NCBI GenBank assembly: GCA_033442325.1
Contig: JAWQFM010000040.1
Location: 1-7,936 of the forward strand
Reading direction: 5' to 3'
Length of the DNA: 7,936 bases
Source: Salpingoeca rosetta
Taxonomy: Eukaryota > Protista > Choanoflagellata
Shown here piece by piece: positions 3,630-6,600 of the stretch. Position 1 is the first letter of the stretch. Each line of letters starts with the position of its first letter. Below the pieces are notes generated by a model. The model was not told the origin of the DNA and ran no database searches. It saw only the letters and a list, made by a program, of their open reading frames with translations. The position numbers and the translations under genes were made by a program.

Positions 3630-6600
3630 GTAAGCAAGGGTGGCGCACTTGCGAAATTGGCAGTTGTCACAATGCAACCCTACCCGGTCCAGCGCAAACA
3701 CCAACGTTGTTTGCCATGAAGCCTGTTTCCTCTGTTGCCTCACAAGCCTTCACCTCCCTCTCCTGCTTCGTCCTCATGTTTCGTTCCTTCAGGACTCCGT
3801 TTGAAACAACCCTCGATCCGTTGCCCTGGCTTTTCAACGGGTGCGCGTTTGACATTATGTGTAGTGTTCGATTGCTAACTGCTGTCAGCCGGCTCTCACC
3901 ATTGTACATGACCATCACATCGCACACCAACTCCCAACCCTTGAATCGAAACGTAATCACGTTTCATCTATGGCTCCATTCTTGCAGCTTGGACCGACGA
4001 GTGTAAGTCCCTTCTGTCTTTCTCCAAGTGCTCGGAGGCAAAGCGTGAGAAGGGCAACAAGGGTGCACAACTTAGTTCAGCTGGGGGCATCGTCTGTGAG
4101 GCGATAGATCGATGTTGTGCTGTGACGTTGTTGCTCGAATTCACAAACAAGCTTTGTTTGCATTGACATGCTCCAGGCTGTGAGTTTTCCCTGGCGGTCG
4201 ACTGGTTGCGTCAGCTGCAAGGAAATTGCTCTGCGTTGAGCGTGTGCTTCGTGTGTGATGCGATGCGTTGACTTGTTGATGCTGCCTTGATGCCAAGCAT
4301 ATGTTGTGTGAATCTGCACCCATACTTCCTCACCTCCCCCCTCGATGATGGACAATTGCTTCTGGTCATGTCGCTGTTCATGGATGGCTCTCACTCCTAG
4401 CCGGTAAGTAATGAGGCTGTTTGTATGAACGACTCGTTCTGCCCTAACATTCTCAAATGGATCAGGGTACTTGCTCAGAGCGTAACTCGCACCTCACGTT
4501 GTCACACGCACCTCACCTGATTGCGACGGTTTTTTTTTGATTACATCCACACCATCGTCTTGGAAGCGGGTAAGTGGTCACATGCTGATGCGCGTTGGAC
4601 CGTTTTGAACCTTATGCGTTGTCCATTTCGTCCAAACTCAACTCACCCCAACTGTACATCACGCATGTCCATGTCTTGCATTTGGTTTGGCAGCTTGTAA
4701 GTGTGATTGTGGCCCTCTCGACATCCGTGGTGCTGTAAAGCTTGCGGTGTGCTTGCAGCCTGTTAATTGGCCATCGATCACTCACTCACTCCCTGATTGC
4801 TGCATGTCGTCGATTGGACGCTAACTGCTGCTTCGCTCGCGTCAGCTTGTGAGTGTGGCGCTGTATCGCTGGCCTTGAAGCTGGTACTTGCTACTGTTGG
4901 CTTACGGTATTGTGCACGTACACGAAGCAAACTCACATGGTACCTGCCTCCATCACGTCAACATTCACTCTGACCTTCTGGCCTTGACCTGAATCATCTC
5001 CGATGCCTGCAACTTTTCCTCAGCACGTACGAACAGTAACTCTTTGTCACTTTATTGTGCATCGCTGCATGAGGTGGTGGTGCCACTGCTTTGCGAGTCA
5101 TTGTGACTGTGCGGCTTGTTTTTTTGGCGCTAACAATTTGCTGCTCTCTGCAACTGCATGCACGATGGCCTCCACTTCCCGCTCTTCCCGTCATCTTCAT
5201 CATACAGGAAGTTGGTTTCCACGCGTTGCAATGATTTCGTGGTCGACTGCAATTGTCGTTGCTTCAGTTCACTTGTGTGCATGACACAAGAACGTGATCG
5301 CACTCACATTAGCCTTTCTTGAACTCCCCGTGTCTGTCTTCGCTGATGCTCACATCGCTGGTCATCAACTTCATCGACAAGTCTGTGAGTTTCTGAGTTT
5401 GGACATGCTCTTGAACACCAGAAAGGAGTCATGAGGGGCGTTCTAGTCCTTTCACCTCTGACACTTTCAGTAACCTGTACTCTCGATGCTTCTGGCCGGT
5501 GTTTTCTTTGAATGCTGAACGCATGCCTGTGACCAATGCTCTTCGATAGTGTGTAAGTACCAACGCGGAGACTCTTGGCTTGTGCACAATGATGTGACTT
5601 GCTTGCATGTGGAATTCCGAATTTGGGTGTAGATTTCTCAATCTCTCTTGCGGTTGTCACTTGCTCACATTGTGATGACTGGTTGCTCGCTTTATAACAA
5701 CAGGAAGTACGTGACGTGTGTGCAAGCCCTTCATGCGATTTGTGCTTCCTGCGTGCCCTGTGTTTTTAGATGCCTGTTATGTTTGAGGCTTGTTATGTAC
5801 TCACGAAAGGACGGGTGGTCGCTTGTCCACTCATGAATCAAACTCGCCTGTCATCCCTCGCAGCAAGTAAGCAGCTACCACTGCTAGTTGTGCCGCTTTC
5901 TGGTTTGCGAGTGAGCAGGCATGTACTCCTAACTATGTTACTTAATGCTCACGCCATACATCCGCTCACGTCATCGTGTTTGACTCAACGCGCGGTTGTT
6001 CGGCACCGAAGCTGGTGAGTCATGTGTGCTGCTGTCATGTTCGCTTCGCACAACCACTCGCCCACATGTGATCATGAACCATTCCAGTGGAATCATTCCA
6101 GTGCTACTGAGTAGGTTGTTTTCGAGAACTCACCACATGGTGACAATGGGTTACATCTGCATCCATGCAGGCGGTGAGTCGTTGACGACTTGTTGAGGAC
6201 TCAAAGGTTGCCGTCGAGTACTCGACTTGAAACTTGAGTTTGTTGGATTATGTGCCGTACTCGTTGAGTGTGAATTTGCTCGATGTTGTGTTCGTTGACT
6301 CATCTCACACTTGCAACTCTTTCCCTCTCCCACACTTCACCCCTTCTTTCCTCGGACCTCGCAGCTTGTAAGTGGCGACTCTTGTGGTGATGCTTTCAGA
6401 GTGCTTCAGTGCTTGAGTGTGGTGTGTGGCGCATGACTGCTCATTGTCGTCGTTGAACCTGGCAGGGATGAATTCGTGGAAGCAATCATCCTGGCTCTGG
6501 AGGCGTATCCCACCATCAAAACGCTCGAGTAAGGCGTTCTCACTTCCCTCAGCTAAAGCTGCAATGCATTATTGTGGAGTCGCCCGGTTTGCCATTGAAT

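Follow-up and report, generated by a model that had tools for sequence, protein, structure and literature searches.

Evidence for fourteen consecutive 3-nucleotide exons in an expressed gene of the choanoflagellate Salpingoeca rosetta

Structure of the gene

The window analyzed here is one whole contig of 7,936 bp from the choanoflagellate Salpingoeca rosetta (GenBank assembly GCA_033442325.1, contig JAWQFM010000040.1), and all coordinates are positions within it. Its plus strand carries a gene whose protein has a polyglutamine N-terminus, a short, nonrepetitive middle and, at the contig end, C-terminal repeats of 14 residues. Between a 15-nucleotide (nt) exon and a 63-nt exon of this gene lies a stretch of 2.4 kb in which fourteen triplets are each preceded by an acceptor AG and followed by a donor GT. 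The mature RNA includes all 14 triplets in genomic order, and they add VLRGFFTNLVNNWRL to the protein (this string counts the codons shared with the flanking exons). We put at roughly 0.88 the probability that these are fourteen genuine 3-nt spliceosomal exons in an expressed, single-copy choanoflagellate gene.

The RNA evidence comes from two contig sets, X1 and X16, both from one 2017 sample, which were aligned to positions 3540-7040. Contig letters that find no contiguous place in the genomic sequence are called loose. The exons, and the one intron found retained, are as follows.

3094..3629 (+), exon 1: starts with the ATG at 3094 and encodes the polyglutamine-rich N-terminus with its (CAA)n run; donor GTAAGC at 3630; placed by open reading frame and frame
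3793..3840 (+), 48-nt symmetric exon, phase 2: aligned with zero mismatches in X1 record 1 and X16 record 4
3988..4002 (+), 15-nt exon preceding the array: signals ttgcag/.../GTAAGT; first letters of the loose end of X1 record 1 past 3840
4177..4179 (+), 3-nt exon 1, GCT: ccAG/GCT/GTGAGT; loose letters of X1 records 1 and 2
4401..4403 (+), 3-nt exon 2, CCG: ctAG/CCG/GTAAGT, with CTCAC 7 nt before the AG; X1 records 1 and 2
4567..4569 (+), 3-nt exon 3, CGG: gaAG/CGG/GTAAGT; third triplet of the X1 strings
4694..4696 (+), 3-nt exon 4, CTT: gcAG/CTT/GTAAGTG; in the X1 strings
4846..4848 (+), 3-nt exon 5, CTT: tcAG/CTT/GTGAGTG, with CTAAC 21 nt upstream; last triplet in the loose end of X1 record 1
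5024..5026 (+), 3-nt exon 6, CAC, weak donor GTACGA: the sole AG-CAC-GT of its interval; sixth triplet of X1 record 2
5208..5210 (+), 3-nt exon 7, GAA, weak donor GTTGGT: the RNA has GAA and not the overlapping decoy TTG at 5212
5382..5384 (+), 3-nt exon 8, TCT: caAG/TCT/GTGAGT; eighth triplet of X1 record 2
5550..5552 (+), 3-nt exon 9, TGT: atAG/TGT/GTAAGT; last loose triplet ahead of the piece aligned from 5704
5704..5706 (+), 3-nt exon 10, GAA, donor GTACGT: opens the piece 5704-5866 of X1 record 2 and is joined upstream to TGT
5707..5863 (+), intron of 157 nt retained in one transcript contig: kept in X1 record 2 (depth 9.9); absent, by letter count, from X16 record 4
5864..5866 (+), 3-nt exon 11, CAA, donor GTAAGC: closes the piece of X1 record 2; opens the 12 loose letters that precede 6466 in X1 record 3
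6012..6014 (+), 3-nt exon 12, CTG: gaAG/CTG/GTGAGT; within the nine letters between 5866 and 6466
6171..6173 (+), 3-nt exon 13, GCG: gcAG/GCG/GTGAGT; central triplet of the nine letters that separate 5866 from 6466
6365..6367 (+), 3-nt exon 14, CTT: gcAG/CTT/GTAAGTG; last triplet ahead of 6466 in X1 records 2 and 3
6466..6528 (+), 63-nt symmetric exon following the array: aligned in X1 records 2 and 3 and X16 record 4; joint 6528>6662 is GT..AG
6662..6754 (+), 93-nt symmetric exon: from contig pieces; joint 6754>6855
6855..6907 (+), 53-nt exon, phase 2 to phase 1: from contig pieces; the loose end past 6907 is the start of the next, 42-nt exon

The reading frame is open throughout from the ATG at 3094, and the array is in frame with the 63-nt exon at 6466-6528. 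The first-pass annotation of this DNA, which was made from the sequence alone, had claimed that the joined triplets are free of stop codons and in that frame, and this is borne out. All introns from 3630 to 6854 are in phase 2, with 18 consecutive frame-symmetric exons (48, 15, 14 x 3, 63 and 93 nt) and 19 successive phase-2 introns. Frame preservation alone is weak proof of such an array, since the frame would survive 3-nt exons in any number.

The units stand out in the genomic sequence. Exactly ten GTRAGT hexamers occur on the plus strand of 4100-6400, at positions 4180, 4404, 4570, 4697, 4849, 5385, 5553, 6015, 6174 and 6368, and AG-NNN lies directly 5' of every one. Given an AG dinucleotide frequency of 0.0335 in that stretch, the coincidence has P = 1.8e-15, and a chance pattern is thereby ruled out. 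Four further AG-NNN-GT units with weaker donors occupy the gaps (5024 GTACGA, 5208 GTTGGT, 5704 GTACGT and 5864 GTAAGC). The fourteen units start at 4177, 4401, 4567, 4694, 4846, 5024, 5208, 5382, 5550, 5704, 5864, 6012, 6171 and 6365, a spacing of 127-224 nt (mean 168, standard deviation 24) that gives introns of 124-221 nt. The ten strong donors each 3 nt after an AG, the four weaker units in the gaps and the intron-sized spacing had all been described in the first-pass annotation, and each was found as described. AGNNNGT occurs 26 times in the stretch, against 6.3 expected, and eleven AG-NNN-GT decoys there are unused. The plus strand of the array is T-rich, as it is in the surrounding introns.

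Transcripts that join the triplets

Sampled words of the region are present at 8% in X1 and 4% in X16, the level expected from exons alone. X16 record 4, a contig of 479 nt at depth 21, has aligned pieces at 3540-3629, 3793-3840, 6466-6528, 6662-6754 and 6855-6907. Between 3840 and 6466 it holds exactly 57 unplaced letters, the sum of the 15-nt exon and 14 x 3. X1 record 1 likewise contains the 3540-3629 part of exon 1, and the joint 3629>3793 in the two records is GT..AG. Past 3840, X1 record 1 continues with the 15-nt exon and then with GCT, CCG, CGG, CTT and CTT. X1 record 2 opens with GCT, CCG, CGG, CTT, CTT, CAC, GAA, TCT and TGT, and then aligns with zero mismatches to 5704-5866, a piece that comprises GAA, the unspliced intron 5707-5863 and CAA; CTG, GCG and CTT follow, and the record runs on to 6466. 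X1 record 3 has CAA, CTG, GCG and CTT ahead of 6466. All 14 triplets are therefore read in RNA-derived contigs in their genomic order.

The contigs derive from spliced RNA, because four other joints within them are canonical GT..AG. The spliced string belongs to this locus rather than to a hidden paralogue, because X1 record 2 retains the locus's own intron between joined triplets. Partly spliced RNA thus exists, with one intron retained and those flanking it already removed. The donor of this retained intron is among the four weak ones, and no other intronic RNA depth is found in the contigs.

The spliced string that the first-pass annotation predicted for transcripts is found in the transcript contigs, and it is contiguous neither in the window nor in the genome. 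A direct join of 4002 to 6466, which that annotation had named as the outcome that would speak against it, is not seen in these contigs. Triplet skipping is likewise absent from the X1 and X16 contigs, which show full inclusion throughout with one intron retention as the sole variant, although contigs hide rare isoforms. The annotation's observation is confirmed and its interpretation supported, the transcript confirmation coming from one sample.

A single locus in the genome

Even with up to three mismatches allowed, the 55.4-Mb assembly does not contain the 42-nt joined string and hence holds no retrocopy; the spliced string also has no match in public metagenome contigs. The locus has no second copy in the genome. 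When the 49-residue peptide across the array was compared with the genome in a protein search, only the 63-nt exon was matched and no paralogue appeared. A retrocopy, a paralogue or a second allele as the source of the RNA is ruled out by the absent spliced string, the single-copy locus, this protein search and the contig with the retained intron.

Other arrays of this kind were sought by pattern. The initial genome pattern was swamped by (AGTG)n microsatellites. Three successive HAG-NNN-GTRAG units spaced 90-230 nt apart occur genome-wide only here, microsatellites and one coding repeat aside, and a strict pair of units with a pyrimidine-rich acceptor is also restricted to this locus. A looser pair gave 15 matches genome-wide, three of them at this locus, versus 24 in the reversed control. 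Five further candidate places in the genome contain no array. The scan for paralogous AG-NNN-GTRAG arrays that the first-pass annotation proposed thus returned none besides this locus with the triple and strict-pair patterns, and these scans found no genome-wide family of such arrays. The array locus is singular in this genome.

A separate observation concerns a GT-rich, intron-like stretch on another contig (C9:1314739-1314959, plus strand), where the unit gtc-AG-CTT-GTGAGTGGGTG recurs in a duplication of about 106 bp. Judged from its sequence, this may be a newly arisen 'intron + 3 nt' duplication like the one proposed below for the array.

Splice signals and a proposed order of intron removal

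The 15 introns between 4003 and 6465 are all ordinary GT-AG introns of 98-221 nt. The pyrimidine content of their last 20 nt is 0.55-0.80, and 11 of the 15 contain, within their last 70 nt, a CTNAY branch-like motif, often ACTCAC, identified by motif match only. All 14 units conform to AG-NNN-GT; the donors have G at position +5 in 14 of 14, and the exonic position -1 is G in only four. GTRAGT donors are enriched in the array (10 of 14) compared with the gene's other introns (one of seven; Fisher p = 0.024). The U1 small nuclear RNA of this genome has a canonical 5' end, ATACTTACCTG. On the minus strand of 4100-6400 there are seven GTRAGT hexamers, because the ACTCAC and ACTTAC branch-like motifs of the plus-strand introns have these as reverse complements; a wrong-strand scan could mistake them for donors.

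Because the introns are about 165 nt long, recognition would be of introns rather than exons, each intron being recognized singly, by intron definition. U1 on the donor (positions -3 to +6) and U2AF/U2 on the acceptor 3 nt upstream are probably mutually exclusive, so that neighboring introns would be removed in turn. Every splice would lengthen the growing exon by one triplet. Strong pairing of the intronic part of the donor (the GTRAGT consensus and the +5 G) would offset the missing exonic pairing. Steric exclusion and strong donors have been argued for animal micro-exons (PMC10250204). The removal of introns is not strictly 5' to 3', because introns downstream of the retained one are already gone in X1 record 2.

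Related architectures

As in other spliceosomal micro-exons, each triplet lies between the acceptor AG and the donor GT of separate introns and is found in RNA from which both flanking introns have been removed. Full-text literature searches turned up neither a run of 3-nt exons nor any account of micro-exon arrays in choanoflagellates, which agrees with the earlier statement that no run of 14 successive 3-nt exons had been described. The locus is an extreme variant of micro-exon gene architecture, for which the micro-exon genes of Schistosoma are the closest parallel considered here. These consist of 10-20 symmetric exons (6-81 bp, mostly 15) separated by introns of up to 5 kb, and they form a schistosome-specific family of 35 genes whose products are secreted and alternatively spliced (10.1101/2023.06.21.545858). 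The first-pass annotation had held that their exons are typically 6 nt or longer; the text of this preprint agrees (6-81 bp, mostly 15 bp), but its abstract gives 3-81 bp.

The schistosome genes and this gene share chains of at least ten very short, frame-symmetric exons with ordinary GT-AG introns, and both are poorly handled by automatic annotation. In contrast to exons of 6-81 bp with long introns, the present array has 14 exons at the 3-nt minimum and introns of 124-221 nt. Also unlike the schistosome genes, it is a single locus with no evident signal peptide, no skipping seen, no Pfam match and no sequence relation to them.

Isolated exons of 1-3 nt are known, including 1-nt exons in plant APC11 and VPS55, a 3-bp exon in Drosophila homothorax and a 3-nt exon in human RPS24 (PMC8831610, PMC7392893, PMC12207440). 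The array has in common with them the extreme size, strong GTRAGT donors, absence from annotations and failure of standard aligners. However, such micro-exons are single, or have one or two neighbors of unequal size, whereas the array consists of fourteen equal 3-nt exons.

Recursive splicing at ratchet points, in Drosophila and vertebrates, also involves a strong donor just past an acceptor, and a long noncoding interval likewise leaves stepwise (PMC6110457). Ratchet points leave no nucleotide behind and lie in introns of many kilobases, whereas here 3 nt are kept and translated at each step and the pieces removed are complete introns of normal size. The array does not conform to the definition of a ratchet point, in which AG and GT abut, because three bases remain in the RNA after each step.

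A further parallel lies in the same gene. At 7040-7817, a small symmetric exon and its intron are likewise repeated head to tail. That array is young (99% identity) and has a 42-nt exon, in contrast to the 3-nt array, which is without detectable repeat identity.

Origin of the array

The array may have originated by tandem duplication of a unit of 'intron + 3 nt', an origin to which we give a little less than even odds. The founding duplication would create a 3-nt exon and keep the frame with one or both of the introns used. Unequal crossing-over would then have amplified the unit, and the copies would afterwards have diverged to saturation. In intron-defining organisms, a lost splice site typically leads to intron retention. 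Every unit would then have been locked in, because such a loss would cause retention and a frameshift rather than clean skipping.

The uniform exon size of exactly 3 nt argues for one copied unit rather than fourteen separate events. In addition, the 99%-identical array at 7040-7817 implies that this locus makes tandem arrays of exon plus intron. When the 3-nt array was compared with itself by BLAST, only the junction words of three CTT units matched (CAG-CTT-GTRAGTG, 14-15 nt, E = 0.06); these shared words favor duplication, and the 14-nt junction motif of 3-nt exon 4 is identical to that of 3-nt exon 14.

Several points weigh against the reading as a whole. With regard to duplication, no repeat identity is left, and the triplets and the peptide are nonrepetitive. 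The 15 introns are mutually no more alike than shuffled sequences (mean local score 9.80 versus 9.83 +/- 0.16). With regard to the exons themselves, the RNA support consists of contigs assembled from two runs, both of the same sample and study, and that the runs are RNA is only guessed in the record. Two RNA sequencing runs of 2026, X4 and X5, bear the same species label and a library described as 'RT-PCR' (reverse transcription PCR); they placed zero reads on 3.5 kb of expressed gene and hence provide no test, and they may be amplicon-like libraries or come from a different organism. With regard to splicing, the order of removal and the steric argument are inferred, and all that the contig with the retained intron reveals about the order is that it does not run strictly 5' to 3'.

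An unlikely alternative to duplication is that fourteen or more introns were inserted independently, one per successive codon of an existing 42-nt coding stretch. Unrelated intron sequences and a nonrepetitive peptide are what such insertions would produce. However, 14 events would be needed, at an exact spacing of 3 nt and in one phase, and we know of no mechanism that makes insertions in this way. Nothing alike is present elsewhere in the 55 Mb, and no introner-like family matches the array introns. In the genome the array gives only a self-match, and an intron family derived from introners or transposons is ruled out by this lone self-match and by introns no more alike than shuffles. The array introns also show no resemblance to the 221-bp unit of the downstream array.

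It is similarly doubtful that the exons were born stepwise, by point mutations that made AG-NNN-GT stepping stones and cut an intron of about 2.4 kb that was hard to splice into normal-sized pieces, each adding one residue. The mean spacing of 168 nt is near the length of the gene's other introns (98-179 nt), the process would resemble recursive splicing (PMC6110457), and the eleven unused decoys indicate that the raw material is common. However, exon birth predicts a mixture of sizes (3, 6 and 9 nt) rather than 14 exons that are all exactly 3 nt long. Were it favored in general, other long introns should hold at least pairs of units, and none do.

Less probable again is a regulated cassette array, in which the fourteen triplets are individually skippable and give many peptide variants, as has been proposed for the Schistosoma genes. 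With all junctions in phase 2, any subset could be skipped in frame, and no combination yields a stop codon, since the sole junction codon that starts with TG is completed by G, C or G. However, every contig shows full inclusion (57 letters in X16 and all X1 strings), within the limit that contigs cannot exclude rare isoforms. The genome also contains no gene family or second array, and the polyglutamine N-terminus has no evident signal peptide.

Many uniform small introns with negligible exons resemble the host genes of small nucleolar RNAs (snoRNAs) in animals; on this reading the exons are minimal because the gene's product is its introns, each of which would yield one small RNA. This explanation is very improbable here. 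No Rfam match occurs within 4003-6465 even at E <= 5, the array introns have no paired C and D boxes and no excess structure (mean fold z-score +0.29), and a snoRNA host gene is ruled out on these grounds. Moreover, intronic RNA depth is limited to the one retained intron, and the reading frame is kept open.

It is just as improbable that the array is not real, whether as chance motifs in one long intron, RNA of an unassembled intron-poor paralogue or retrocopy, or a contig artifact: the single sample and the guessed run type leave room for this, but the P value of the pattern, a joined string equal to the 14 genomic triplets in order and absent from the genome at <=3 mismatches, the link without mismatch to the locus's own intron in X1 record 2, and the four other GT..AG joints of RNA-derived contigs stand against it.

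It is also unlikely that the array is more than a product of duplication that has been locked in, such as a functional device (a delay line or ratchet of fifteen obligatorily sequential splices that times or gates expression), a combinatorial diversifier with one residue per exon, or the footprint of an undescribed, codon-periodic mechanism of intron gain.

Remainder of the gene and its neighbor

The features of the contig outside the array are as follows.

1..1526 (-), open frame of at least 508 residues that extends beyond the contig start: leucine-rich-repeat protein with LRR Pfam families
2741..2797 and 2921..2977 (+), direct repeat of about 57 nt, copies 180 nt apart: in a G/T-rich region upstream of the ATG
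2843..2943, between the copies of that repeat: sub-threshold snoZ188 match, 21 bits, E = 1.3, probably chance
3294..3522 (+), about 76 CAA repeats with one interruption, in the expressed exon 1: two long polyglutamine runs
7040..7817 (+), tandem array of a 221-bp unit, 3.5 copies, 99% alike: Tandem Repeats Finder; unit of a 42-nt exon and a 179-nt intron

The 221-bp unit is found only here in the genome. Its 42-nt exon (EEEIGRLNNDVQNK) lies at 7047, 7268, 7489 and 7710. The transcript contigs extend into the first copy. About 120 nt beyond the array the contig stops, in sequence unlike the unit, so the full array and the 3' end of the gene are probably unassembled.

The N-terminus of the protein is rich in polyglutamine and lacks a hydrophobic leader, and no signal peptide is evident. 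Neither the 49-residue stretch around the array nor the 93-nt exon matches a Pfam family. A likeness to leucine-rich repeats of the ribonuclease-inhibitor type, seen by eye, is unsupported, as there is no Pfam match. The tail of exon 1 has no words in common with any database protein. The minus-strand protein is identical to no public protein; its best named relative, with 46% identity, is a 'variable lymphocyte receptor A' of Salpingoeca rosetta. Neither gene of the contig is present under a public name in the protein collection, and there is no gene-call record for the contig.

Implications

The locus indicates that a canonical spliceosome, with an ordinary U1 and GT-AG introns, can accurately process fifteen introns that are separated by exons of one codon. 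Models of exon and intron definition, of steric limits and of exon-junction-complex deposition (here 16 junctions fall within 57 nt) assume exon sizes that are far exceeded by this extreme. An intron in every codon of a stretch is also an evolutionary puzzle. Gene predictors and aligners would call a single intron of 2.4 kb here and a protein 14 residues too short, and tiny exons may be under-counted in protist genomes. Because choanoflagellates are culturable and tractable, the locus could be used to study the order of splicing and the recognition of minimal exons.

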